64,000 nt of DNA from Blastocladiella emersonii ATCC 22665 (lineage: Eukaryota; Fungi; Blastocladiomycota), in assembly GCA_025594325.1 (NCBI GenBank), contig JANHCV010000001.1, forward strand, positions 434,001 to 498,000. Reading direction: 5' to 3'. Position 1 is the first letter of the stretch; the number at the start of each line of letters is the position of its first letter. Both the position numbers and the translations under genes were made by a program. Below the pieces are notes generated by a model. The model saw only the letters and a program-made list of their open reading frames with translations, did not search any database and was not told the origin of the DNA. Of the stretch, positions 1 to 17,228 are shown piece by piece.

Positions 1-260
1 GAGACGTTTCGCTGACGGTTAACTTAGGGCGATGCGTCACGGGGCCGAACCATGAGCGGGATCAAGTGAGTGGCCGGAGTGCTGCGCCACAGACCCACCC
101 GAGCCACACGCGCGTGCATCGCGGTGCTCTCGGGTCGGGTGTCGAGGCTACCAGTCCGACTTCCGTCGCCTGCTCGAGCACCCCATAAAAGCGACGGACC
201 GCCCTCGACCCGACCCGATCTATCCTCTGCTCCCCTCATAGATTCAGTAGACGAAACGCC

Positions 261-1226
261 ATGATCCACGCCCCCGCCCTCCTCGCCATAATCGCGCTCG
301 CGTCCCTCACCACGTCGGTGCACGCGTGGGGCAACGAGGGCCACGAGGCCGTCGGCACCATCGCCTACAAATTCCTGCAGCCCAAGACCAAGACCACCGT
401 CGACCAGCTGCTCAAGATCGGCAACTACTCGTCCATCGAGCAGGCCGCCACCTGGCCCGACTGGTACCGAGGCACGGGCGGGCACCCCGAGACCACCGCG
501 CACCACTTTATCAATGCGTACGTTGACTGTACTTCGGCTTCGGGCGAGCAATCGACTAACCACGAGCAATCGGACTATAGCCAGGACGAGCCGACGGCGC
601 ACCCGCAAATGTGCGGCCTCGTGTACCCCAAGGACTGCACGTCGGCGTCGTGCGTGGTCGAGCAGATCGCCGTGTCGGCGGGCCACCTCGCAAAGTACCG
701 CCGCCGCCCCGTGTACGGCCGCAAGAACGCGACCGCAGACCTCGAGGCCGGCATGGCGCTGTCGTTCCTGACCCACTACGTCGGCGACATTGCCCAGCCG
801 CTGCACGCGTCGGGCTTCCTCAAGGGCGGCAACGGCGTCAACGTGACCTTCGCCGGCAAGACGGTCAACATGCACAAGGCGTGGGACAGCACCATCCTGC
901 AGAAGACGATCGCAACCGAGTTTGCCGGCGACAAGGCGCAGTGGGTCGACAACCTGATCGCGTCGGCCGATCCCGACGGCGCGACGTACGTGCGGTGCGC
1001 CGAGAAGGTGGATGGGACCGATTTTGCGGCGGCCGAGGCGTGCGCCGTCAAGTGGGCGCAGGAGTCGGTCAAGCTTGTGTGCACGGCCGTGTTCCCAGAG
1101 GACTACTACAAGGAGAACATGGAGATCGCAAACGAGTACTTCGCGTTTGCCCGCCGCATCGTCGACAACCAGGTCCTGACGGCCGGGCTCCGGCTCGCGG
1201 CGGTGCTGAACACGATCTTTGCGTGA
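261..1226 (+). CDS. Secreted S1/P1 nuclease; predicted join(261..517,581..1226)
   Basis: Signal peptide then WGNEGH, plus WPD, HFINA, FLTHYVGDIAQPLH and NMHKAWD zinc-ligand motifs. The 63-nt GTACGT..ACTAAC..CTATAG intron, once removed, gives HFINAQDEP...C. Confidence 0.92.
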   Translation: MIHAPALLAIIALASLTTSVHAWGNEGHEAVGTIAYKFLQPKTKTTVDQLLKIGNYSSIEQAATWPDWYRGTGGHPETTAHHFINAYVDCTSASGEQSTNHEQSDYSQDEPTAHPQMCGLVYPKDCTSASCVVEQIAVSAGHLAKYRRRPVYGRKNATADLEAGMALSFLTHYVGDIAQPLHASGFLKGGNGVNVTFAGKTVNMHKAWDSTILQKTIATEFAGDKAQWVDNLIASADPDGATYVRCAEKVDGTDFAAAEACAVKWAQESVKLVCTAVFPEDYYKENMEIANEYFAFARRIVDNQVLTAGLRLAAVLNTIFA

Positions 1227-1574
1227 TGGCGAGGTGTCGAAGTGGTTGTCCTGATGGAGTAAGGTTGGAGTTCAGTCAATGGAACAGCATAAATGACGTT
1301 GCGCAGCGCAGGGCGCGAGACCGGTGGGCGAGTGCAGTGGTTCGAGACGCGATGCGCCACACCCGCGAGGAACACAACGAAGCCGACTGAACGAGAGGAA
1401 CACGCTGCGAGCTGGGAGGGAACGCAGTGTCACATACCGAGGGGCACTTGACCGATGCGACGGGAGACTAGTACGGGAAACTATTTAGCAACTTTGCGGG
1501 CGTTGTGATCTGACAGCGGCGGACCGCGGGAGTCGACGCGGGCGTATATTGCCAGAGTCTGCAGTATAAACGTT

Positions 1575-1741
1575 GTCGGGCGTTGGTGGAGTGGCATCCA
1601 CCTTCGCCGGGCGCGTACGCGTATAATGCCAGGGATCACCCCCTCCTGAGCCCCGGATCAAATCGCGCCAGGCGACCGGCCCAGCTCAGATGAATAACAA
1701 GCCCGCAAGGGAAGGGGTCCTGGGCAGGTAACGTAACGCAT
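1575..1741. repeat. Conserved non-coding element, copy 1, upstream of SNF2-RING-like gene
   Basis: Reverse complement matches 7623-7796 and 13369-13530. The 44-nt core 1575-1618 is identical to 7753-7796. Confidence 0.85.
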
Positions 1742-2010
1742 GGCAGAACGGTCCAGAAAGAAAGGAGTGTATGAGAAAAAGAAAAAAACAAATTTAATAG
1801 TTTTTTTTTCTCGGAAAACAGGCGACCCACGCAGGCTCGAGCTTTTGCCGTTCGCGCGGCAACGACGCGCTTGACAGGCGCACGTGACCGACGCGTCTTG
1901 GACTGGCCTGTGGCGGCGGCCGTTCCCACACGGCGGTCCGCCATTTCCTCCCTCCCTCCCGCCGCCCCGTTGGTATATCGCCACCCGCATTGCACTAACT
2001 CACTATCTCG

Positions 2011-5000
2011 ATGCAACGAATGGACTCCATGGACCCGACGGCGCTCGCCGACTTTGACGCGCCCGCCGCGCGACACGACCCCATGCGCGAATCGCCGCTA
2101 CTCGCGATTGACGAGGACCCTGTCAACGCTAATCGACAGCAGCTACTCGATCCCGCCACCCCGCCACCGCCGCTCGACGCAGCCGACTTTGACCGCCGCG
2201 TCCTCGCCGAGCGCGTGGCGCGCGGGTGGTGGTGCCCGTTCCCGCACACGCCCGCGTCGCTGCTCGAGCAGCGCTGCAAGGACGGCGCCGAGGCCCGCAA
2301 GCTTCTCAACGAGTGCGCGCCGATCCGGAACCTCGCCGACGAGGACGGCGTCGTGGCTTCCCTGTTGTTACACGACTCTTCGCAGCACACTCGCATTGCT
2401 TCCTTTCCCCAAGCCAATCCCGGCCTGCCCTCGTCCGGGTCCCCTCCTGCCGCTTCTGCCGGTACGTCACGGCACGCCCCTTCCATCTCTAGTAGCGTCA
2501 AACTGACCTGCTGCTCTAACACCTTCGCCCCGCCTGGCAAAAAATCGGCCCGCGTCTAGCCGATCCCGCAACGCCTCCGCAGTACTACTACCTCGCCACC
2601 TACCACGTCCTGCAGCAAGAGCCGCTCCCGCTGGACGGCCACCGCCGCCTCGCCGTTCCTGGCATCGAGTTCCAGAACCGCATCGCCCCCGCCCTGGACT
2701 CGGACCCCAGGCCTGCCGCGACCTACGTGCAGTTCAGGGACCCTGCCGCCGCGCCCTTCTTCGTGGTAGCGGTCCGCGACACCCCCGCCACGCCGCCGCA
2801 CCCGTCGCCGCACCACTCGTTGCCGCGACCGATCCCGGCGTCAGCGGCGGCGGCTTCACCGGCAGCATCTCAGCCGATGCCGAGCGAGAAGTGGAAGAGG
2901 CACCGCTGGCACCACTACACGCTCGAATTTTACCTCGACGCGGACGCCGTCAACCGCAGCCTGCGCGCCGGCGTCCCGGGAGCCGCCCGCGCCGTTCGCC
3001 GGCTGCTGCGGTCGCACCCTCCGATCCCGCCGCGGGCCATGCTCGACGAAGTCGCTTCCGCTTCCTTATCACCGCCGCTGCTCTCGCTCTGGCGCCCGAC
3101 TTGGCCTCCAGCGTCTCTACCGCGAGGCCTGCCGCGAGGGCTGCCCGGATCGCTCAACAACAACTCGAACGACTCCAACGGCATGCTTGTCGCCTGGCTC
3201 GTGCAGCTTGAGGCAGATCCATACGTGCTTCCGGTATCGCCGCCATCCGCTTTGGTGAGGCAGCCATACTTGCGCATCGGGCCCGACGGCGTGCTCTTCA
3301 ACCTCGAACTTGGCGACTGGGCCGAGCACGACGACGTGTGGTCTCCTCCCTTGCCTCAGCAGCCTCAGCAGCCGCAGCGGGCATCGTCACCGCCGCTGCC
3401 GCACTCTCCCGTCGTGCCAGCCGCTGGCGAGGTGATAAGCGCGGGCGCCATCTTCTCGCCGCTGTCCGAGGACCTCTTTCTGTCGATTGCGCAGCTGGCC
3501 CGCGTGCGTCCCGGTCGCTTGGACTCGGCCGCGGCCACAGCCACAGCCACGGTCACGGTCACGGCGGCCCGGCCGACGTACATTTCGTCGCGGGCCACGC
3601 TGCTCGTGCTCAACGCGGCCGACGTGCCCGAGGCGCTGCGTTGCATGTTTGGACTTGGGACGAGCAAGACTTCCCGTTCCGGAAATGCGACGCGGTCCGC
3701 AAGACGAGGCGGTGGACGTAGCGGCGGCGGCGGTCCAGCTGAGGCGACCACCGCTCCACCTCTCCCAGATCCGCCGCGGCCGCTTTGCATCGTCACCATC
3801 TGGAGCATGAAAAAGTACCGCGCGACGACGTGGGACCAGATCCGCGACGCCGACCTTGTGCTTGTTGCGCCGGCCGTCATCATGCGTCCCGACTACCGCG
3901 ACCACATTGCTTCGCTGGTCGGCGAGACCGAGTACCACGGGCCCGGCGCGTTTCGCGGCGGCCGCGACAGTCGTGGTGGTTTCGGGTCCGGCGTCCCCGA
4001 GGACATGTCTCCCCAGCAGTACGAGTTCTCGGAGCTGCTCGCCGAGCGCATCGCGGCCCTCAATGCAGCGGGCCCCGCGGCGTACGGGTCGACGCGGGGC
4101 GAGGTCATCTTCGAGCGCGTCTGGTTCCACCGCGTGTTCCTGTTCAACGCGCACCAGCGCATGGATTTGGTGCAGGTCAACGCATGGAGCGCCCGCCTGG
4201 CCAACTACGGCGCCCTCTTGTCGAAGCGCAGCCGCGCCGGCGAGCACGGGCCTCCGCCCGCGGTCGGCGAGCGGATCACCGCCCTGCAGTCCAAGGTGGC
4301 CTCCCACCAGGTCCTGTGCGGGTTCGCCGGCAGCTTCAAGTACGCCGTCGTGCTGCCGCCGCTGCAGCTGCAGGACGGGCGCGACTTCAAGGACTGGGCC
4401 GACCGGCTGCCGGCCCCAGCGCTGCGTGCATACCTGCAGCATCTCCCGCTCGGCGACGCGCTCCCGAACCTGCCGCACGCCGACTGGGTCGGGTTCATGC
4501 AGCGGGCCACCCGCATGACGACGACCACGGCCACCGCAGCCCCTGCTGTGGCTCCCGCTGCGGTCCCCGCGGCGAGTGCATCGGGGACTCGCACTCCCGC
4601 TCGTGCTGCCGCTGACGCTTCCGTCCCCGTCGCACCGCTTCCTGCTGTCGACCAGTACGCAACATCGGTGGTCGCCGTGGTCCCGACGGCGGCCGAGCTT
4701 CTTCTCGCGCACGGCCAGGCCCCGTTCGCCCTGATCCCAGATCATTCGCCGAGTCGCTCGGCTTCTTTGGCGGCACCTCGAGCTCCTGGTCCGGCAGTCG
4801 GCTTCGTACCGTTTTCGCGGTACCGCCAGCTGCGCGGCCTCATGCGCGGGCTGCAGCACCACCAGCTGTCGTCTCTACCTGCCCTCGCCGCCGCCGCCCC
4901 CGCTGCTGCCGCCGTCGCCGTTCCTCGACCGATTCTCGCTGTCGCGCGGGAGGCCCTCGCGCTCTCGCTCTGCAGGACACGGACGCGGCCGCTGACACCG

Positions 5001-6152
5001 GCAACACGGGCCGCCGCGTGGCTCCTCGCGGCCTCCGCGGCGGCGGCCGCCGCCGTTTCTTCTGCTGCGGCTGCATGTGCATCAGCAACCAATCCCGCGG
5101 CCTCGCTCCGGTGCGCGTCGTGCTCGGCCGCTATTGATATCTCGCGGGACGGGTTCGCCATCACGCCGTGCCACCACGTCTTTTGCCGCGCGTGCCCGGC
5201 GGCGTGCTTCTCGGGCGATAGCAGCAGCACTGGTGGTCTCGAGGCCAGTTGCGGCGCGTGTCGCCAGTCGATTGACCATGACCTCGTCAGCCGCGGGCGC
5301 GGTATCCCGGCTCGACTCGACGATTTCTCGGTTTTGCCGTCGACCATGATGATGACCTCCTCGGCCCCCTTCGCGTCGTCGTCCATCACCCCCGCACCAT
5401 CTGATCCTGCCGCATCGAGCAGCAGCAGCGAGGCCTTTCCGACACCTTCCTCCTCCTCGATCGCGTCGTCGTGCCCAGCGCCGCCACGCCTGCCCACCAG
5501 TCTCTCGTCCGCGCGGTACGGCAGCAAGCTCGCGGCGGTCCTCGAGTACATTGTCGAACAGGAGCACCTGTACCAGTCCGAGCAGCACCAGCACCAGCGG
5601 CAGAAGTCGTCGTCGCAGTCGCGTCGCGCGGCACCCGTGCCATCTGCGCCACCCGCGGCGGCGACAGATCATCCTCGCCGAGGCCCGCGCACCGTCGTGT
5701 GGACCCAGTTTCCGGGATTCGCCGCGCTGCTCGTCGCGGCCCTCGCCGAGCACGGCGGGATCTGCGCCATCGACGGGATCGCGGCAGGCCACCCGGCCGC
5801 TGCCGCCGCAACCGAGGCCGCCTGCCGCGCGTTCGAGCGGCTCGATACGGCGGCGGCGGCGGCAGCGTCGGTGGTCATCTGCCTCAACCCCGAGACCTAC
5901 CTCTACCGCTGCGCCGCCCTCGCGGTGAGCCACGTCGTGTTCGCCCACCCGCTGCTGGCCAAGACCGAGTCGGCCGCGCACGACCTCGAGATGCGCGTCC
6001 TCGCCGCCGTCATGCCCTCCACCGTCGGCCGTCCCGAACGGGCCGCTACTACGGGTGCCGCGGACCGCCGAGTTCGCGTCGCACGCTTCGTGGTTTCGGG
6101 CACGGTCGAGGTCGCGCTGACAGAGCGGCGCACGCGTTCCCTGTGGGAGTAG
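2011..6152 (+). CDS. Degenerate SNF2 (RAD5/16- or DNMT5-like) helicase-fold protein with C3HC4 RING; join(2011..2461,2560..6152), 1347 aa
   Basis: A 98-nt GTACGT..CTAAC..CTAG intron joins the two ORFs in frame. Motifs in order: RATLLVL, DADLVLVA, WFHRVFLFNAH (Walker B position), RING CASC..CHHVFCRAC..CGAC, YGSKLAAV, TVVWTQF, SHVVFAHPLL, RVARFVVSGTVE. Confidence 0.75.
5675..6121. repeat. 447-bp perfect inverted repeat, left arm (partner 8823..9269)
   Basis: Base-by-base comparison with the reverse complement of 8823-9269 showed no mismatch. Confidence 0.9.
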
Positions 6153-6655
6153 TCGTAGTTGCAGCCGGCGCCGCCGCCCATTCGCGCTCGATCGATCACC
6201 ATCGCGGCCGCCGTCGCCGTGGCCACGGCCGCCACGCTGGATCGCTTGCTCACTTGACTTGCTCGCTCTCTGCCGCCCGCCCCTGCGTCGCCCTGTCGTT
6301 TCTGTCGTCGTCGTCGAGATTTGACTCTTACCCCATCATCCCCATCCCCTGTTCATCGCATATACATACATCAATCAGCGCAGCGGGCATGGGCATCAGT
6401 GACCCCGGGTCGTGCGTGACGTGATACTTGGCGCGCGCAATCCGACCAGCGCTCGCGCTTTGAAAAACGATGGAGCCGCGGCGAAATCTCGCGCGTTCGC
6501 CCGCTTCACTCGCCTCACACGGCACACGAGTCGAAGCGGCGAGCGGCTCGCTCGAATCAACGCGGGCAGGGTCGGTGGTCCATCAAGGGTTGCAAGCGCG
6601 GATGGGGAATGAACGGGTTGCGTGTGTGTACATTCCATTTAAGATTTAAGTTGTG

Positions 6656-7224
6656 CTAAGCTAAGGTGGGGAGAGGATGGGTGTTCGAGAGCAGTGGTAG
6701 GAGGGAGGGTGTGGTGGTGGTGGTGGGCGGGTGGAGGACGCGCGGCGGTCGCACCGTGGCCGCTACGGGGTCGTGGCCGTGGTCGAGGTCGCCGCCGGGA
6801 TCGTCGGGGTCGTCGGGGTGCGAGACCGCGAACTTGGCGGTCCGCTTCACCGCCATCGTGTAGTCCATCTTGGACTTGCGGTCGCGGAGCTCGTGCTGGT
6901 AGCGGCGGCGGATGTAGTCGCGCACCTGGGTCGTGAGCTCGAGCTGGCCCTGCGCGCCGATGCGCGCCTTGGCAACGGGCACCACCACCCGCGCGCCACG
7001 CGCTCGGCGAGGACGCGGCGGTCAAAGTCGGCCGCGTCGAGCGGGGGTGGCGTTCGGGGATCGAGATCGAGATCGAGAAGCTGCTGTCCACGGGGTTCAG
7101 GGTGCTGGTCAATCGCAAGCAGCGGCGGCGGCGATGCTCGGACGGGGTCAAGTCGCGCGACGGGCGCGTCAAAGTCGCCCAGCGCCGTCGTGTCCGCCGG
7201 GCCCGCCGAATCCATTCGTTGCAT
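6656..7224 (-). pseudogene. Chimeric third paralog: N-terminal module (ATG 7224) fused at ~6974 to an unrelated coding-like segment that is out of frame by 1 nt
   Basis: MQRMDS...PPPLDAADFDRRVLAERVARGWWCP matches both long paralogs, then homology stops. The downstream frame (KARIGAQGQLELTTQVRDYIRRRYQHEL...) has strong GC3 codon bias. Confidence 0.65.
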
Positions 7225-7622
7225 TGAGCGAGCGAGTTTGCAAGTAGTGCAGGGAGTCTTGTTGTTGAGCAGCAAGCGGCCGGCCTGGTTCTACACATGG
7301 GGGAGAGGCCGCGCGCGGGAGCGGGCGCCGCCACAGCGCGATCGGGCGGAAACGCGAGGTCACGGCGTCGCACGCGCCGCGCCACGTGCGCGTATCCGGA
7401 TATCTCTATATCACCCATTCAGGCTCGACTCGATTGCCGGCCATCATCGGGGCAGTTCTCGAGAGATCATTCTCTCGATCGATTGATAGACAGATAGCAT
7501 GACGAGACGAGACGAACGGCAGGAACGGCAAAAAGAAGTTTACAAGCGTTATTTATATTTTAGTTACTCAAGTTCGTTCTTTTCACCACTCTTCCACCTA
7601 CTCCAAACCGGCTCGTGTCTGC

Positions 7623-7796
7623 ATGCGTTACGTTACTCGCCAGGGTCCCCTTCCCTTTTCGGGCTTGTCATCCATCAGAGCCTTGCCGGTCCGGTCTATG
7701 ACGGGAGTTGATCCGGGGACTCACGGGGGGGAAGATCCCTCAGCTTTGACTCGTACGCGCCCGGCGAAGGTGGATGCCACTCCACCAACGCCCGAC
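7623..7796. repeat. Conserved non-coding element, copy 2
   Basis: GCGTTACGTTAC...CCCCTTCCC...GATCCGGGG...GTACGCGCCCGGCGAAGGTGGATGCCACTCCACCAACGCCCGAC. Confidence 0.85.
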
Positions 7797-8794
7797 CTAG
7801 ACATAGCAAGCAACCTCGCACATCTACCCGTGTCCCGCGGCTCCCCCGTGTTCCTCAGCTCCCTCCGCCGCAGTATCGCCGCCAGCCCTGCTCCCGTTGA
7901 CGATGCGGACGGTTTCCGCTCGTTCTCGCCGCAACCAACTCCTTTGCCGCTCTTGAGGTACCCCGGCACAACCCGACCCGTTCAGCAGCATGGCAACGTT
8001 GACGTCAAAGCGGGCCCGCAGGATCGTTCCACCCGTGAACTCCAAGCGCGTTTGCCAAACACTGACGAGGACTTCTCACGGTCACGCAACGTTGACTCAC
8101 GCTCAGTTTCGCGCGGCCACACGCCTTGCTTCAAGGAAGGTATGGGAGAATGTCGCCCGTCCGCGAGGCCCACTTCACCGAGAACTGATCTCGTCTGCTC
8201 AAGCATCGAGTAAGGAGACTTGTAGACGAGAAATCGGGACCCTTGTCCGCAACTGGTTGTGTCGGACGTCCTCTCGGAGCTGTCCATCGACGCGAGAACC
8301 GAATCGGCGCCCGCAAGCTTCTTGAAGCACGCGTCGATCGCGCCAGTTCCCTTGTCCGCGCACACCCTCACCGATCCGCTTCGCACGAACCCACGATTCG
8401 TATGCGACACGTGCATCCATTACGATCCCGCCGCGTATACATTTGCCCGCGTTAGTTGACTGAACAGCTCTCTGCCTCGTCTCGTCTCGGATCCGCGCCC
8501 CGCATCGCGCGGGTGAAAGTGAAGTGAAGTGAAGGAAGTTGGTCGCTCGCGGGTCGATGATCGCGATCAATGAACGCGCTCGCGCTGCTTTACTCGGCCA
8601 ACACGACTTCGAGTCTGCTCTCTTATCAAGGTTGTGATGCGATGCGATGCAGAACGTGTGTATGCAATGACCGTACTACGGTCAGTGAACAAAGAACAGG
8701 GTGAGTGGACCTCGAGGAGGATGCGGCAGCAGCGCGGCCATGGCCCGATCGATCCGTGGTCCATGGCCGCGGGCAGGGGCCGCGAGCGACGCGA

Positions 8795-11700
8795 CTACCA
8801 CAGGGCACGCGTGCGCCGCTCGGTCAGCGCGACCTCGACCGTGCCCGAAACCACGAAGCGTGCGACGCGAACTCGGCGGTCCGCGGCACCCGTAGTAGCG
8901 GCCCGTTCGGGACGGCCGACGGTGGAGGGCATGACGGCGGCGAGGACGCGCATCTCGAGGTCGTGCGCGGCCGACTCGGTCTTGGCCAGCAGCGGGTGGG
9001 CGAACACGACGTGGCTCACCGCGAGGGCGGCGCAGCGGTAGAGGTAGGTCTCGGGGTTGAGGCAGATGACCACCGACGCTGCCGCCGCCGCCGCCGTATC
9101 GAGCCGCTCGAACGCGCGGCAGGCGGCCTCGGTTGCGGCGGCAGCGGCCGGGTGGCCTGCCGCGATCCCGTCGATGGCGCAGATCCCGCCGTGCTCGGCG
9201 AGGGCCGCGACGAGCAGCGCGGCGAATCCCGGAAACTGGGTCCACACGACGGTGCGCGGGCCTCGGCGATGATAGGTCGCGGGTGCCGGTGCCGCGCCGC
9301 GCGGCTGTTGTTCCCGCTGCTGGTCGTCGTCCGGGTGCGGTGGCTGCTGATGCTGCCGCTGGACAATGTACGCGAGGATCGCCGCGACCTTGCTGCCGTA
9401 CCGCGCGGCCGAGAAGGTGGTGGGCGAGCGCGGCGGGGATCGCAGCAGCGGCGGTGGCGAAGATGGGCAGGATGCAGTCGAGGACAAGAAGTCGCTCTTC
9501 AGCTCGAGGCGGCGGGACCGGGTAGTGCCGTAGTGGTGGACGATGAGTGGGGGGCCGAGGCCATCATGGTCGACGGCGAGAACGAGTCGATGAGTAAAGC
9601 CGAACCAGTGTTGCTGTTCCCGCGGCTGACGAGGTCGCGGTCAATCGGCTGGCGACACGCGGCGCACGCGACAACAGTCAATGCTGGGTCCAGGGCGGTT
9701 CCACCGCTGGCCTCGAAGCTGCCGTCGCCCGAGACGAAGAACGCCAAGCAGCACGAGCGGCAAAAGACGTGGTGGCACGGCGTGATGGCAAACTCGCCGC
9801 GGGAGAGATCAATCGCGGCCGAGCACGACGCGCACCGAAGCGTGACGGCGGTATCGGGTGCTCTTACTGCAGCCGCGGCGGCTCCAGCGAGTAGCCACGC
9901 GGCGGCCCTCGACGTCGGTTCCCGGACGCCGCCCACCGATCGTGTGAGAGCCGCGCGTGCGACGACGAGCACGGGAAGAGGAACGGCGGCGGCGGCGGCG
10001 GGCGCAAGGATCGGCTGCGCTTCGAGGACGTCGCGAGGTGCTGGCAACGACGATGAAGCCGCGCGGTGCGCACCGCTTGCCGTAAAGTCACCCGGCAAGT
10101 CGGACGCGATGGCCAGAGAAGCCAGCTGGTGGTGCTGCAGCCCGCGCATGAGACCGCGCAGCTGGCGGTAACGCGAGAGAGGTACCGGACCGGCCGCTGG
10201 CGTACCGTACGGCTGGGATGCCGCCAAAGCAGACGGATTCGGAAAAGCACCACTGGGTTGCAAAGCAAATGTGGCCTGGCCGTGCGCGAGAAGAAGCTCG
10301 GCCGCTGTCGGCACCACGGTGATCACCGCCGTTGCAAGCCGATCAACGGCAGCAACGGTACGTGGTCCTCGAGCGGGAGCTGTAGCGGGACCAGGCGGTG
10401 CTGCAGTCGTAGCGGGACGGCGACTCGCCGTCGCTGCCGCGGGACCGCGAGGCCCCGCCGCTGCACCGAGAGCGCGACGTGTCGCAGTCGTAGTAGGGCC
10501 GCGAGGTGCCGTGGCTGCGGCGGGAACGGCGGCGGCCGTCGTCACCGTAGTCGTCATGCGGGTGGCCCGCTGCATGAACCCGACCCAGTCGGCGTGCGGC
10601 AGGTTCGGGAGCGTGCTGCCAAGCGGGAGATGCTGCAGGAACGCAGGCAGTTCGCGGGCCGGAAGCTCGTCCGCCCAATCCTTGAAGTCCATGTCGTCGG
10701 GCAGCTGCTTTGGCGGCGGCGGCACGACCGTGTACTTGAAGCTACCGGCGAGTCCGCGAAGCATCTGGTACGAGGTCAGCATGGGCTGCAGCACGCCGAG
10801 TCGCTCGGCGAGCGCGGGAACGAGCCCGCGCTCGCCCGCGCGGCTGCGCTTCGACAAGAGGGCGCTGTACTCGGCCTCGCGGAGGCGCCATCCAGCGACC
10901 GGCACCATCTCCATGCCATGGATGCCATGGTGGTCGTGGAACAGGAACACGCGGTGGAACCATACACGCTCAAAGATGACCTCGCCCCGGGTCGTCCCGT
11001 AACCCGCGGGGCCTGCCGCATTGAGAACCGCGACGCGCTCGGCGAGCAGCTCCGAGAACTCGTACTGCTGGGGAGACATGTCCTCGGGGACGCCGGACCC
11101 GAAACCACCACGACTGTCGCGGCCGCCGCGAAACGCGCCGGGCCCGTGGTACTCGGTCTCGCCGACGAGCGAAGCAATATGGGAGCGGTAGTCGGTGCTC
11201 ATGATGACGGCCGGCGCAACGAGCACAAGGTCGGCGTCGCGGATCTGGTTCCACTTCATGGCAAAGTACGTTTTCATGCTCCAGATGGCGAGGATGCGAA
11301 GCGGGCGCGCTGGCTGATCTGGACGAGGTCCATGAGCAGCCGCTGCTGCAGGCCCGGGCGCCGCCCCGGGTGGACCACCACCTCCCGCGGGCATTCCCGC
11401 GGCCGTCGTTGGAGCAGCCGCCGCGGCAGTGGGACGCGCCGCCGCCGCAATCCCGAACATGCGGTGCAGCACCTCGGGCACGTCGGTCGGTTCGAGGACA
11501 AGCAGCGTGGCCCGCGACAAAATGTACGACGACCGCGCCGCGTGTCTCCCAAGGCAGCGGAAGCAGCGGAAGCGGCGGCGGCAGCCGACGAGGCGAGGCT
11601 GCTCGGACGCACGCGGACCAGCCGATTAATCGACAGGAAGAGGTCTTTGGACAGCGGCGAGAAGATGGCGCCCGCGTGTAGTATTTCCTCCTCACCGCCA

Positions 11701-13084
11701 GCACCGACAGGAATGGCGCGAGAGTTTGCCGATGCCGATGGCGATGGCGATGCCCGCCGTTGAGTGGCGGAAGAAGACGACCACACGTCGTGCTCGGCCC
11801 AAGCACCAGCTTCAACGTTGAAGAGTACGCCGCCAGGGCCGATGCGCAGGTGCGGCTGGATCGTGGGAGCAGAGCACTGCTGCGGCGCCGGGAGCACGTA
11901 CGGATCGGCTTCGAGCTGCACGAGCCAGGTGACGAGCATGTTGTTGAGCGATCCGGGGGGCAGTCGCGGCTGAGACACCGGAGACCAAGTCGGACACCAG
12001 AGCGTGAGCAGCGGCGGCGATAGAGAAGCGGAAGCTACCTCGGCCAGCATGGACCGCGACGGGATCGGGGCGTGCGACCGAAGCAGCACGCGCACGCCGC
12101 GGGCGGCTCCCGGGACACCTGCGCGCAGGCTACGGTTGACGGCGTCCGCGTCGAGGTAGAAATCGAGCTCGCAGTGAAACCAGCGGTGCCTCTTCCACGA
12201 ATTGGCGTCCTGCGGCGCCACCATCTCGGCTGCCGGGATTGGCTGCGTCGAGCGGCGCCACGCCGGGTCCGGCGGCGCGGTCGGGGTCTCGCTGACCGCG
12301 ACCACGAAGTAGGGCGCGGCGGCGGGGGCCCTGAACCGCGCGTAGCTCGCGGCCGGCTCGGGGTCCGAGTCGAGCGCGACCGCAATCTGGTTCTGGAAAT
12401 CGGTGCCAGAAACGGGAACGCGGCCACGGCGGCCGTGCAGCGGGAGCGGGCCCTGCTGTAAGGCGTGGTACGTGGCAAGGTGGTAGTACTGCGCCGATGG
12501 CGGTGCTGCGGTGGTGGCGACTACACGCGGACCGATTTTTTGCAGGGCGGGACGCGCAGGTGTTACAGCAGGAGGTCAGTTTGTCGCTACTCGATGCAAG
12601 CGGTATGCCGTGACGCACCAGCAGAAACCGAAAAAGGTGAAACGGGTGAGAGTAGGCCGAGATTGGCTTGGGCGGAGGAAGCAATGTGAGTGTGCTGCGA
12701 AGAGTCGTGTAACAACAGGGAAGCCACGACGCCGTCCTCGTCGGCGAGGTTCCGGATCGGCGCGCACTCGCTGAGAAGCTTGCGGGCCTCGGCGCCGTCC
12801 TTGCAGCGCTGCTCGAGCAGCGACGCGGGCGTGTGCGGGAACGGGCACCACCACCCGCGCGCCACGCGCTCGGCGAGGACGCGGCGGTCAAAGTCGGCTG
12901 CGTCGAGCGGCGGCGGCGGCAGATTGGCGGGGTCGAGATCGAGATCGCGAAGCTGTTGTCGAGTAGCGTTGTCGGGGACTTGGTCAATCGCAAGAAGCAG
13001 CGATGCTCGGACGGCGTCAAGTTGCGCGACGGGCGCGTCAAAGTCGACCACCGCCGTCGGGTCCATGGCGTCCATTCGTTGCAT
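8795..13084 (-). pseudogene. Inverted paralog of the 2011..6152 SNF2-RING-like gene; intron 12521..12618; two apparent 1-nt frameshifts (~11545-11590 and ~9495-9503)
   Basis: Collinear with copy 1 over its whole length and has a 98-nt phase-1 intron at the same position. The frame changes between ORFs 11274..12305, 9499..11520 and 8795..9487. Assembly error is not excluded. Confidence 0.7.
8823..9269. repeat. 447-bp perfect inverted repeat, right arm (partner 5675..6121)
   Basis: Exact reverse complement of 5675-6121. Confidence 0.9.
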
Positions 13085-13368
13085 CTAGTTAGAGTCGGCG
13101 TGCAATGCGGGTGGCGGTATACCAACAGGGCGGCGGGAGGGAGAGAAAAGTGCGGACCGCCGCGTGGGAACGGCCGCCGCCACTGGCCAATCCGAGACGC
13201 GTCGGTCACGTGCGCCTGTCAAGCGCGTCGTCGTTGCGCGGAACGGCGAAACGTTCAGCAAACCAGAAAACTCAAAAGGAAATTCGGTTTATATTCAGTT
13301 TCAAGTTCACAGTTCTGTCTAGTTCAGTTCTCTAGTCGCTCCAGTGCCCGGCCACACCCTTTTCTGCT

Positions 13369-13530
13369 GTGCGTTACGCTACATGTCGGCTCCCCTTCCC
13401 GCAGGCTTTACATCCATCTGCCCGGGCCCTTTCGTCTGGTGGGATTCGATCCGGGGGGCAGAGGGGGGACGATGCGTGACATACGCGTACGCGCCCGGCG
13501 AAGGTGGGGGCCAATCCACCAACGCCCGAC
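13369..13530. repeat. Conserved non-coding element, copy 3
   Basis: The core at 13487-13530 differs from the other copies at 3 positions, all within the 8-nt spacer. Confidence 0.85.
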
Positions 13531-13696
13531 CTTGCTACGCCGAGAAACTTTGCCCATACCCATGTGCGGTTGTTGCTCGTGCATATCCGTCGCCCTTCTG
13601 CATGGATGGCGGACGGCTGACGCGCGGTCAGGGCCCCGATAGTTCAGTTGCACTCACTCAAAGCCCCTCAACGTCTTGCAGTTTCTTTCTCACTCC

Positions 13697-15150
13697 TCAA
13701 CTCAACAACGTCACAATGTGTGATAGGTGGTTCGCAGTCTCGTGCGGAGCATCGATCGGCTCGCGATGGGATTCAAGCTCGTCAAGCGCCTGGCATGAGA
13801 ACATGATGATGGCCATGGCCTCGGGTCATGCGTTCGCAGAAGCCGATGGCTGCTGCGTTCCACAGCCGCGGATCGGGGTGAAGGCGCATCGTCCGAGCAC
13901 TCGCTGGCCCGCGACGTTGAGTTCGCGGACCACAGTTTCGGGGCCGAAATGAGCAAGGACACGCAGAAGCTTGATCTTGAAAGTCTCCTCGCCATCAGCA
14001 GAAGCGGGATCGGCGTCGTCCGACAAACTGACTCGCGTCCGCTCCATCGGGAGCACTCAATGAAGTGACCGGTCATGCGTCAAGCTCGCAACAGGCACCG
14101 AGTGCTGCGTGAGACTCGGCAGCACGCCGTGAATTTAAGACAAGGCTGATCAGAAAAGCAGCAACCGCAGCTCTTGCCTCAGGGAAAGGTCTCTTGAATG
14201 CTCGACTAGGAAGCTTGCACGAGCACACGCTCTGAATCTGGATAGAACATCGGGCGTCGGACACTCGTCGTCGCCAAACTCGGGATTGTCCTTGCCGAGC
14301 GACGCGAGCCAGTCCAACAGGTGCTCGACGGCGGCTTGCTCGCGTCTCAAAGTACCGGATCGAACTTCCCATGAGCAAAAGGAGGTCAATGACAAAAGAT
14401 ATTGCTTCTGCGAAAGCAGCATCGCAATGCACGCGAGCGATGCAGCGACTGGCCGATGATCCCTGGCCGTTTTGCGGCAGCGGGGAATGGTGCCTGGATC
14501 AGAGCAAGCTGCTTGAGCAAGTCCGACCACTGCACGTTCGCGTTCACTTGTGTGAGGGCTCTTATCTTAGACTTCGACTGGAAAGAATTGGAGAGCTTAC
14601 CGGGGTTGATCAAACTTGAAGTCGGTGCTGTTGATGCAAGCGATTACGTCGTTGGTACTCGCGAGCGAATTCGGCTGTGTTGAGTGGCGAAGGAGGGGAC
14701 TTCGAGGAAACACGATACAGCTAGTCAGGGTTGTGTATTCCTGCCTCGGCCCCGAACCAGGGCTGGGTGAGGGAGAGCTGAAGACAAAAGCGGGAGCGCC
14801 GCCGCGGGGTCGCGGCGGGGCGGAAGAGGCGGTTGCGGGCGAGAACACGCGAGATAAGGTGGACGATCGCCCCGATCACCACCGCATGAACGACGCGTAA
14901 CAGGCTGTTCGCAGGTCCTCGAATCCAAGACGTCGGCCAACGACATCCGCCAGCCGGAAGCAACGCGCTCGGCATGAACAAGGATGGCGCGGTACTCGGA
15001 TCCGGTCACGTCGACGGGAGGACGTGTGTTACGCGGAAGCAGTGCGTCGACGGCAAGCGGAACAAAAGGTGCAAGAACAGGCGCCGCGGCGGCGGACCTT
15101 CGTCCGCGCGTGGTCCGCGGTCGCTTTGCAGCAGGTTCATCAGCTGTCAT
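13697..15150 (-). pseudogene. Decayed gene of unknown family with in-frame stops
   Basis: ORFs 14150..14530 and 13826..14056 share one frame, broken by TGA 14150, TAA 14135, TGA 14057 and TGA 13826. Possible 5' part starts MTADEPAAKRPR at 15150. Confidence 0.35.
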
Positions 15151-17228
15151 GGTGGTCGTAAACCAACCTAAACCAAAACCTTGAGCCTGGAAGCGGGAAG
15201 GGGTGGTCGCACTTTGATCGCGAGCTCCCCTGCATCCGCGGTTCATGGGAGCGCGGCTCGGGCAAGCGTCACGGACAGGTTCATCGAGCGTGTTGCATAG
15301 AGCCTTTCATCTGATTCATGGGCAGCGGCGCCGAGGTGCGATCATAGTTGAGAGCTCGGGTCAAGGGGTCGCGCCGGCGGCGCCTTCACCTCGCGGCTGC
15401 CACACCCTCTCGCTCGCATTCAAGTACTCACGAGGATCGCGGGACGGGTAGCAAAGCGTCTCTTGCGACGAGAAGGAGGAAGGGCGCGCGATAAAAGGCA
15501 TGAAGGGGCGCTGGCTCACGCGACCGACGCGACCAACGCGTCGCTCATCCGAGCCGCGTCGCAGCACCAGCGCGGTGCCGAGAAGTGCGAGAGATCCCAG
15601 GAGTAAGAACGTCCGCGGCGTGTTGGCGGGCGAGAGCAAGTGCAATGGAGCGGAAGCGACGAGATCGAGGGCCCGGCGACGGATCGAGAGCGCGGCTACG
15701 GTGGCCCGACGCGTGTAGGGCGCGATCCGGCTCGCGAGGTCAGGGAACCATGGACGGCTCGATGGAAGAGCGAGGTGGCGGAGATCAATGGTTGCGGGAG
15801 CGAGAGTGCTGCGCCGATGCGGAGAGACGCGGTTGATGAGCGACGAGCGCATGGGAACGGCTTGTGCGCGACTGGCAGCGCTTCATCATCACCGCGCCCT
15901 CGGCCACGTCGGATCAGCATGCCCATCACCGGCCACAGAACAGCAGTGCATCGGCCCCTCGTCGCGCCCATGCTCGGCCGCGCAGCTGGGCAAGATCCGG
16001 TCGGCGTTTTTAGTGGCGCCGCGCATCGGCACCGCCGACCTCGGCCCGTCGCGTTGCACCCAGTCGCGCCCCGACATGTCCTTCTCGTTGGCCCGCGATC
16101 CATCGACCTGCATCTTCATGGGCGAGCGATCGCCGGTCACGGGCGCGGAACACGCTTTCGCTCGCCTCGCCCCCTGCTGCGACCCTGCCTGCTGCCACGC
16201 TCGGACCGCTGGCCGGCACACGCGACGTCTCCCGCCAGCGCACCCACTCGCGCGCCGTGTTCGCGTCCGCACTCTCGGTCAATCGCTTCGCGACCCGCTC
16301 GATCGCCCCGCTCTTATCCGGCGCCATGATAATCACCCGGCAAACGTGCCCGCTTGGCGCAACGCGTCTCGCGTCTCGCGCCCGCACGCGCCGCGCCACC
16401 GCGCCCTTGTCTCCGCTGCCGCGCGAACGACGCCGGTGTCTCCCCGCATGTCGACCGCGACGCGTTCCTCGGCACGAGCGAGAGCGCGAGCGCAATGCAC
16501 CCCGCCGCCCGCCGTGCTTGCCCGCCCGCCGTGCGATGCTGCTGCGATCCATGCCGCGGCCGCCGGTCGCCTCTGCTCTGCTCTTCATTTCAACCCGTGA
16601 GTCCGCAACTCGCGCCGCCCAGATCCGTTCTACATCACCGACCTCCTCTCGGCCTCGATCGGCTCGATCAGCACATCGTCGTCGCTGTCCCTCACGGCGG
16701 CGGCCTCGCGCGACGCGCCGTGGACCTGGCTCCCTGGCTCCCGGACCTCGACTCAACCACCGCGACAACCGCATCCGCGTGGTGGATCGTCCTCTCGGCC
16801 ACCAACTTGACGTTGGTCTCGCCGGGGCCGGCCGCCTCACACACGCGCATCGGCTTTTGGTACGCACCATCCCCTGATCTGCTACCCACCGTACCAACAA
16901 CCCGAATGACACCCGCGTTCCGTGTAGCCCTTGAGGCTCAGCAGCGTGTTTTCGCCAAGGAGGTCGCGCTCACCCAGTACGACCACAAGCCGTTCAAGTA
17001 CCGGTCGCTGCACCCGACCCTGCCGCGGTGACAGGCCACGTGGGAGGCTGAACGCCAAGCCGCGCGCCCATCGCCCGCCGGTCACACGCACCGACAACGG
17101 CGCCATTTTCTGGCCTTGATGAACGACTGATGGGAACCTGACGCTCTCCCTCCCCAGCAACGTAGCAAGTAGCAATGTTAGTCCATGCATCTAGTCCCCC
17201 CGACGACAGCGGCTCCATCGACACCACC

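Follow-up and report, generated by a model that had tools for sequence, protein, structure and literature searches.

A conserved structured RNA element accompanies paralogs of a SNF2-RING-like gene family in Blastocladiella emersonii

What is the palindromic element that precedes each of three paralogous genes in the fungus Blastocladiella emersonii? The genes lie in a stretch of 64,000 nucleotides (nt) from strain ATCC 22665, hereafter the window (assembly GCA_025594325.1, contig JANHCV010000001.1, positions 434,001 to 498,000). The original prediction for this DNA described an 11-8-11 inverted repeat within a longer conserved block. Three readings were offered: a structured non-coding RNA, a dimeric transcription factor site or a lox-like recombination core. 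Here, we report that the structured RNA reading is supported. The helices of the element have been kept by compensatory changes between strands up to ~130 nt apart. We also propose, with a probability of about one in two, that each copy encodes, as a gene or at least as a transcribed unit, a ~170-nt structured RNA and was duplicated with the promoter and first exon of a SNF2-RING-like gene family.

The window contains exactly three instances of the inverted repeat, GGCGAAGGTGG-N8-CCACCAACGCC, with positions 1579-1608 (-), 7763-7792 (+) and 13497-13526 (+). The number expected by chance, from dinucleotide-preserving shuffles, is 0.00. Each repeat is part of a conserved block of ~170 nt and, when the three blocks are aligned, mean column identity is 82-84%. 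We refer to these copies as E1, E2 and E3 (Table 1). The paralogs share the start ATGCAACGAATGG, and the element is upstream in the same relative orientation each time. The distance from the near edge of the element to the ATG is 268 nt for E1, 397 nt for E2 and 283 nt for E3. Hence, the pattern count and alignment bear out the predicted arrangement. Alignment also confirms that a 44-nt core is the same in E1 and E2, and that E3 differs at three positions, all within the central 8 nt (ATGCCACT versus GGGCCAAT). The E1 and E2 hairpins are identical while the rest of the element is ~70% identical.

Further copies were identified using covariance models. Model R1 was built from the three window copies, on the strand written in the original prediction. 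The interior structure of R1 was wrong, and it was superseded by model R2, which has a revised structure and was built from five copies on the gene-sense strand. The searches yielded six more copies, with three distinct sequences, upstream of paralogs down to 43% protein identity. In total, there are nine copies of the element and six distinct sequences. All are ~200-400 nt 5′ of the conserved start context and in the same orientation. E7 was not in the seed of R2; its score rose from 19.9 bits with R1 to 41.4 bits with R2 (E ~2e-7) and it is at the expected place. The proteins of the adjacent genes, H9P43_002960 and H9P43_002969, have just 43% identity to the query paralog. Pairwise identity between elements is 60-77% among E1-E4, 60-67% between E6 and the others and 44-52% between E7 and the others. 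With filters off, covariance searches did not find the element near family members on contigs 7 and 11, or at the syntenic locus of Blastocladiella britannica. In four DNA runs, contigs cover E2 and E3 at ~1.4-1.9 times the depth of single-copy DNA, for which the known copies account. The element sits at the homologous position within duplicated cassettes, which are segmental duplications, and not at new insertion sites. It is close to the edge of detectable homology between older duplicates, and cassettes are present in both orientations. One segmental duplication, of 6.9 kb and 99.35% identity, has its copies ~100 kb apart and inverted; it carries a paralog and the element (L001 7164-14053 and L002 7160-14053; L numbers denote loci outside the window).

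The element is a conserved island and its flanks cannot be aligned. We aligned four copies from exon 1 to 600 nt past the element and determined the fraction of invariant columns in each 30-nt interval. This fraction is 0.33-0.73 across the element, 0-0.2 in the AT-rich spacer on the gene side and 0-0.17 on the far side. High values are also found for the coding part and for a promoter-like block (GCCGCCAC ... CACGTG). Conservation no higher than that of adjacent duplicated non-coding DNA had been set out beforehand as the result that would speak against the element; the profile of invariant columns is the reverse. The element is non-coding: the copies differ from one another by indels of 1, 2 and 4 nt, and the short upstream open reading frames (ORFs) do not stay in the same frame between copies.

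In the sense of the gene, the element folds as a hairpin (H) followed by a stack of helices, P1-P2-P3-P4-P5. A side hairpin, P6, is located in a three-way junction between P4 and P3. Hairpin H consists of the palindrome and an outer stem, GUC/GGC; the CCCGAC tail is therefore conserved. There are 7 pairs and a one-base bulge in P1, 8 pairs in P2, 5 in P3 (a C run facing a G run) and 6 in P4, whilst P5 ends in the motif GGAUCGAAUCC. The P1 strands GCGUACG/CGU[A]ACGC are replaced by GUGUGCG/CGCACAC in E4 and by CACCGCG/CGU[C]GGUG in E7. In the model-fitted alignment, P1 is 100% paired and five of its seven pairs have changes on both sides. For hairpin H, 87.6% of cells are paired and four pairs have changed on both sides. 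For the complete structure, 83.5% of cells are paired, compared with 75.8% in shuffled controls and 36-42% when the partner is slid by 1-3 columns. Both sides have changed at 20 of the 49 pairs (9.2 in shuffled controls; 2-6 with slid partners). None of 500 shuffles reached the observed value in either comparison. In a hand-curated alignment, which reproduces all sequences exactly, 28 of the 49 pairs have compensatory double changes. RNAalifold, run independently on the model-fitted alignment, recovers H, P1, P2, P3, P5 and P6. Even at ~48% identity, E7 keeps the whole architecture. Single-sequence folds of this GC-rich DNA have folding energies no better than those of shuffles (z = -0.42, +0.68 and -0.19). 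No trans target for the conserved single-stranded motif was found within the window.

Long-range compensatory changes across six distinct copies thus favour the structured RNA among the readings originally offered. It had also been suggested that shared blocks could pair at long range. This holds for GCGTTACG, which pairs with CGTACGC to form P1, but the pair proposed for the second copy, GGGTCCCC/GGGGACTC, is not the conserved one. Likewise, the repeat arms are unchanged among the three window copies only; with more copies the arms do change, but compensatorily. Compared to the window copies, the hairpin arms of E4 are changed at 8 of 30 positions and those of E7 almost wholly. Pairing is retained in both. 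The 8-nt spacer, thought to vary freely, contains a GGC that is invariant in all six distinct copies.

A Watson-Crick helix can form from either strand of a DNA sequence, and only G-U versus A-C cells can discriminate between them. For the gene-sense strand, the curated alignment gives 21 G-U cells, 36 mismatches and 87.7% of cells paired. The opposite strand has 9 G-U cells, 48 mismatches and 83.6% of cells paired. On the sense strand, the E4 hairpin forms an uninterrupted helix of 12 bp, three of which are G-U pairs; on the other strand, there are three A-C mismatches. The outer stem of H contains C-G in E6, U-A in E7 and U-G in the remaining four copies, and only on the sense strand is it paired in every copy. 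It is therefore likely that the RNA is read from the gene-sense strand. By the G-U counts, the RNA strand is probably the complement of that written in the original prediction.

The classical A box consensus of genes that RNA polymerase III (Pol III) transcribes is TRGCNNAGTGG. On the sense strand, hairpin H carries an A-box-like motif, TGGTGGAGTGG, TAGTGGATTGG or TGGCGGAGCGG, with 9-10 matches to the 11 consensus positions. Alignment columns G22, G23 and C24, within this motif, are invariant; they form the GGC of the hairpin loop, which resembles G18-G19 of the transfer RNA (tRNA) D-loop. A B-box-like motif, GGATCRANNC, is present ~60 nt downstream of the A-box-like motif in every copy. In E7, a perfect GGTTCGAATCC forms a 5-bp stem and 7-nt loop, as in a canonical T-arm. 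Using patterns that were relaxed after the copies had been seen, TRGYNNANYGG and GGWTCRANNC separated by 30-80 nt occur in six of six distinct copies and nowhere else on either strand of 188 kb (0.15 matches expected). A run of four T residues does not occur within any copy on the sense strand but does occur in E2 and E4 on the other strand. A run of four to nine T residues (T4-T9) lies 44-117 nt 3′ of every copy, which is weak evidence for a terminator since the spacer is AT-rich. The A and B motifs and the T runs fit a putative type-2 Pol III gene. The element is not a tRNA gene; it has no cloverleaf with an acceptor stem, and neither ARAGORN nor the Rfam tRNA model finds one.

The element corresponds to no curated Rfam family. 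In a search of window positions 1-16000 with E up to 1, no match overlapped the copies; the two matches obtained (E = 0.12 and 0.32) were at 3334-3395 and 5345-5406. For E6 and E7, there was a single match, to mascRNA-menRNA, confined to the E7 T-arm (15.9 bits against a gathering threshold of 42.5; E = 7.4). A scan for bacterial promoters and terminators returned nothing, and scans of this type are irrelevant to a fungus. We found no description of such an RNA from Blastocladiella in the literature.

The DNA between the element and the ATG has two parts. The AT-rich patch is not conserved and is followed by the conserved promoter-like block, ~100-170 nt before the start codon. The block occupies window positions 1840-1920, 7290-7390 and 13140-13215. 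In gene-sense order it contains TTTTGCCGTTC, CACGTG, a CCAAT-like GGCCAAT (or a variant) and GTGGCGGC. These features suggest that the block is the paralog's own promoter and that the mRNA would start downstream of the element. Because the conserved block resembles a promoter for the paralog, the element probably constitutes an independent unit upstream of the mRNA and outside it. Housekeeping RNAs encoded in multiple copies are, in most cases, homogenised. The element copies are not homogenised; they diverge in step with their neighbouring paralogs. More weakly, this pattern suggests that each copy may work with its own neighbouring gene.

Our preferred reading, that each copy is a gene for a structured RNA, would operate as follows. 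The gene-sense strand would be transcribed by Pol III from the internal A and B boxes. The RNA would open with the hairpin of ~38 nt, whose upper stem and loop resemble a tRNA D-arm and carry the A-box-like TRGYNNANYGG. A long coaxial stack of P1-P2-P3-P4-P5 would come next, with P6 in the three-way junction and the T-loop or B-box-like GGWTCRANNC at the tip. Transcription would end at the T4-T9 run, giving a primary transcript of ~215-300 nt. Less securely, the RNA may be a partner of the encoded protein. Alternatively, the unit, bound by TFIIIC and Pol III, may shield or tune the adjacent Pol II promoter. Transcription, polymerase and function are all read here from sequence.

Several observations count against this proposal. 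The structure test involves six distinct sequences that are related by descent and come from one genome, and both the curated and the fitted alignments are inclined towards the structure. Identity of the E1 and E2 hairpins may result partly from gene conversion. The box patterns were defined post hoc, and the motif enrichment is partly circular in consequence. T runs are expected anyway in an AT-rich patch. ARAGORN detects no tRNA or transfer-messenger RNA in the window or in six loci, and lowered thresholds give pseudo-hits that are inconsistent between copies. E2 has no match in Rfam at E up to 10, with the tRNA model included. Some cells favour the other strand, namely A-C at 18:27 (E6) and 19:26 (E3) and, in four copies, C-A at the inner end of P3. 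Finally, the search for copies covered the window and the family loci, and elsewhere in the genome there may be copies that are not linked to the gene family.

The same structural evidence would be expected if the element formed the far portion of a long 5′ leader, or of an upstream transcript, made by Pol II from the paralog itself, and acted in cis as a structured RNA to control translation, stability or transcription. Such a role would suit the gene-sense orientation and fixed site, 200-400 nt upstream, and a cis-regulatory RNA should diverge together with its paralog, as is the case here. However, the AT-rich spacer and the promoter-like block with its CACGTG and GTGGCGGC, between the element and the ATG, suggest that the mRNA starts further downstream. 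In addition, the element contains upstream AUG codons that are out of frame and not conserved (the AUG of J4/6 in E1-E3 is ACG in E4), and these would hinder translation. We regard the leader as unlikely. Transcription might instead proceed in the opposite direction, with a divergent non-coding RNA starting near GCGTTACG, by the AT-rich patch, and ending in the hairpin as a 3′ terminal stem-loop. A TATA-like AT-rich sequence is appropriately placed, 60-75 nt upstream in that direction, and every Watson-Crick helix would also form. A terminal U-G that extends P1 in four copies and a G-U closing pair in the E3 hairpin fit this strand only. Conversely, the strand is the poorer of the two by G-U cells and by cells paired. 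It has A-C mismatches in the E4 hairpin, C-A in the outer stem of H in four copies and TTTT inside E2 and E4. Furthermore, no gene or sequence common to the copies lies downstream in that direction. A divergent RNA is thus distinctly unlikely.

The tRNA-like A and B motifs could also be those of a functionless, decaying relic, left by a tRNA gene or a tRNA-derived short interspersed element (SINE) upstream of the ancestral gene, with similarity kept by gene conversion. Identical hairpins in otherwise divergent E1 and E2 would then be unsurprising. Yet conversion yields contiguous tracts of identity and not compensatory double changes across copies that are 44-77% identical. Nor would a relic explain why the element can still be aligned when neither of its flanks can, or why the architecture of E7 is intact. 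This makes a relic very unlikely. Least credible, and extremely improbable in our estimation, is an element acting as DNA, that is, a dimeric transcription factor site, a lox/FRT-like core or a transposon end, such as a Helitron-type 3′ hairpin, that moves or inverts cassettes. The inverted arms do flank a short centre, and the element does lie near the homology edge of older duplicates whose cassettes are found in both orientations. However, duplex DNA leaves covariation between the strands of P1 and P2, ~130 nt apart, unexplained. In sites of the lox/FRT type, inverted arms of invariant sequence flank an asymmetric spacer that can vary freely; such sites have a cognate recombinase and undergo rearrangement. 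Here, the arms vary and the central GGC is invariant. This pattern, along with the long-range covariation, speaks against the lox-like core and the dimeric site of the original prediction. Its statement that the window holds no recombinase gene stands, and Pfam detected no recombinase domain in the flanking ORFs. At the hairpins, contigs from four DNA runs contained neither strand-switch nor inversion joints. The sole joint at the element (7736 to 13509) is an E4/E5 contig mapping across two copies and not a rearrangement. A loose end at window position 11226 in run X4, TCGTATAACTTCGTATAATGTATG, is loxP linker sequence; most likely, this is an artefact that stems from the linker of a Cre-lox paired-end library and does not mark a lox site in the genome. 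A Helitron 3′ end has a hairpin 10-12 nt before a terminal CTRR, and a RepHel gene. No CTRR is conserved after the hairpin, and the copies lie in segmental duplications instead of at new insertion sites. A Helitron-type end is not supported; CTAG follows the hairpin in E2 only, and the associated gene is SNF2-RING-like and not RepHel.

Returning to a structured RNA gene, known systems share parts of this arrangement. Like tRNA and other Pol III type-2 genes, whose internal A and B boxes TFIIIC binds, the element has an A-box-like motif ~10 nt from the start of conservation, a B-box-like motif ~60 nt further on and a T run downstream. It also has a D-loop-like hairpin loop with invariant GG and, in E7, the GGTTCGAATCC stem-loop. 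Unlike tRNA genes, it has no cloverleaf and no closing acceptor stem, and consists of 150-178 nt with a long helical stack. Rodent BC1, the 4.5S RNAs and mascRNA are lineage-restricted small RNAs, derived from tRNA and made by Pol III, in which a tRNA-related 5′ region with an internal promoter folds as an extended hairpin and not as a cloverleaf. The element resembles RNAs of the BC1 type in its tRNA-like 5′ hairpin with promoter-like motifs and in its lineage restriction. It differs in having no sequence relationship to them and in that its copies are tied one-to-one to protein-coding paralogs, with which they diverge. Tandem orientation relative to a protein-coding neighbour separates the element from the units of trypanosomatids; as in those units, and in tRNA gene/TFIIIC chromatin boundaries, a tRNA-like unit is directly upstream of another gene. 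The source on trypanosomatids describes small nuclear RNA genes with an upstream, divergently oriented tRNA-like unit whose A and B boxes act on the neighbouring Pol III gene (PMC4950102). A boundary acting purely as DNA would not need the RNA fold, which here is itself under selection. Compared to tRNA-derived SINEs, the element has a similar tRNA-related head with A and B boxes and a similar size (150-300 nt for SINEs). However, none of the nine copies is dispersed to a new site, and there are no target-site duplications and no 3′ tail repeat. Within the loci searched, a SINE is not supported, since all nine copies are at the same position of homologous cassettes and the depth over E2 and E3 is explained by known copies. 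With lox/FRT cores, the element shares 11-nt inverted arms and a centre of 6-8 nt. The arms are conserved as pairing and not as sequence, the centre is conserved, and recombinase gene and rearrangement joints are missing.

The 1141-amino acid ORF of gene 1 has 96% identity to H9P43_000170 of B. emersonii ATCC 22665. For the window paralogs, a RING finger is the sole Pfam match and scores under the gathering cut-off. More distant relatives have weak SNF2 and RING matches. An exhaustive protein search gave 15 relatives, all from Blastocladiomycota. The family is SNF2-RING-like, specific to B. emersonii and apparently inactive. The 14-nt start, ATGCAACGAATGGA, is found exactly in eight places: window positions 2011-2024, 7211-7224 and 13071-13084, L004 5031 and 6617, and L005 2941, 4406 and 5992. 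These sites include degenerate remnants of the first exon, and nucleotide conservation at the start is tighter than in the remainder of exon 1. The remnant at L005 2941 retains the CACGTG block and has no recognisable upstream element. The annotated model H9P43_002960 (L004 6001-11042) spans E7 and, from a 5-kb gene, encodes just 922 amino acids. The sister model, H9P43_002969, and the conserved start suggest that L004 6617 is the real start. In B. britannica, the homologue (L007, MU624603.1) adjoins a Peptidase_M3 gene, like the window locus, and is without the N-terminal module of ~350 amino acids. The B. emersonii lineage may have gained this module and the element together. An S1/P1 nuclease gene (Pfam E = 1.2e-53) at window positions 261-1226 (+) converges on E1 from the far side and is outside the duplicated cassette. 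At L010 (JANHCV010000007.1, ~108.9-125 kb), the product of a called gene at 1-1065 (+) matches PF07282 (Cas12f1-like_TNB) and is a TnpB/Fanzor-like nuclease. This gene is ~5 kb from the family member H9P43_006013.

Table 1. Element copies, their parts and the associated genes. Positions refer to the window unless a locus is named.
Feature	Position	Strand	Remarks
Element copy E1	1572-1742	+	sense of gene 1; model R2, 168.4 bits
E1 5′ hairpin H, 3+4+(2)+6 pairs, 6-nt loop	1575-1612	+	contains the 11-8-11 palindrome
E1 A-box-like, D-loop-like motif TGGTGGAGTGG in hairpin H	1584-1594	+	pattern scan
E1 helix P1, 5′ strand GCGTACG	1613-1619	+	pairs with 1732-1739
E1 helix P1, 3′ strand CGT[A]ACGC, bulged A	1732-1739	+	covariation
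E1 B-box-like, T-loop-like motif GGATCAAATC	1655-1664	+	tip of P1-P5 stack; pattern scan
T9 run, first T run 3′ of E1	1801-1809	+	AT-rich unconserved spacer; candidate Pol III terminator
Promoter-like block of gene 1, CACGTG to GTGGCGGC	1881-1917	+	between E1 and ATG 2011
Gene 1, H9P43_000170	ATG 2011	+	downstream of E1
Element copy E2	7622-7799	-	model R2, 161 bits
E2 hairpin	7759-7796	-	
E2 A-box-like motif	7777-7787	-	
E2 B-box-like motif	7705-7714	-	
CACGTG of promoter-like block	7383-7388		between E2 and its gene
Truncated, chimeric paralog	ATG 7224	-	downstream of E2
Element copy E3	13368-13533	-	model R2, 164.6 bits
E3 hairpin	13493-13530	-	
E3 A-box-like motif	13511-13521	-	
E3 B-box-like motif	13443-13452	-	
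CACGTG of promoter-like block	13207-13212		between E3 and its gene
H9P43_000171	ATG 13084	-	downstream of E3
Element copies E4/E5 (identical pair)	L001 and L002 9507-9676		model R1, 85 bits; one ~310 nt upstream of H9P43_000161 start, the other upstream of H9P43_000142
Element copy E6	L004 4663-4833		contig 3, present twice; model R1, 73 bits; 197 nt upstream of remnant ATGCAACGAATGGAC start
Element copy E7	L004 6157-6307		contig 3, present twice; model R1, 19.9 bits; 311 nt upstream of the probable real H9P43_002960/002969 start

A bolder and rather doubtful extension is that each paralog has a dedicated, co-evolving, tRNA-like small RNA gene, so that RNA and protein are a cognate pair. The pair might act as a ribonucleoprotein in which the RNA scaffolds or guides a remodeller-like protein. 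Alternatively, the Pol III unit might gate the neighbouring promoter. If true, a protein gene and the RNA that partners it would here be passed on and duplicated together, as a single cassette, in a eukaryotic nuclear genome.

Each paralog has retained one upstream copy of the RNA element over a minimum of four rounds of duplication. The sequence of the element has drifted to ~48% identity while the fold has been preserved, which is an unusual pattern. It points to an RNA and its neighbouring protein-coding gene being functionally linked one to one, which is rare in eukaryotic nuclear genomes. If transcribed, the element would provide a clear example from nature of a different fold that re-uses the promoter and loop motifs of tRNA. 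It would also represent a new family of structured RNA, in a fungus of an early-diverging lineage in which non-coding RNAs have hardly been explored.

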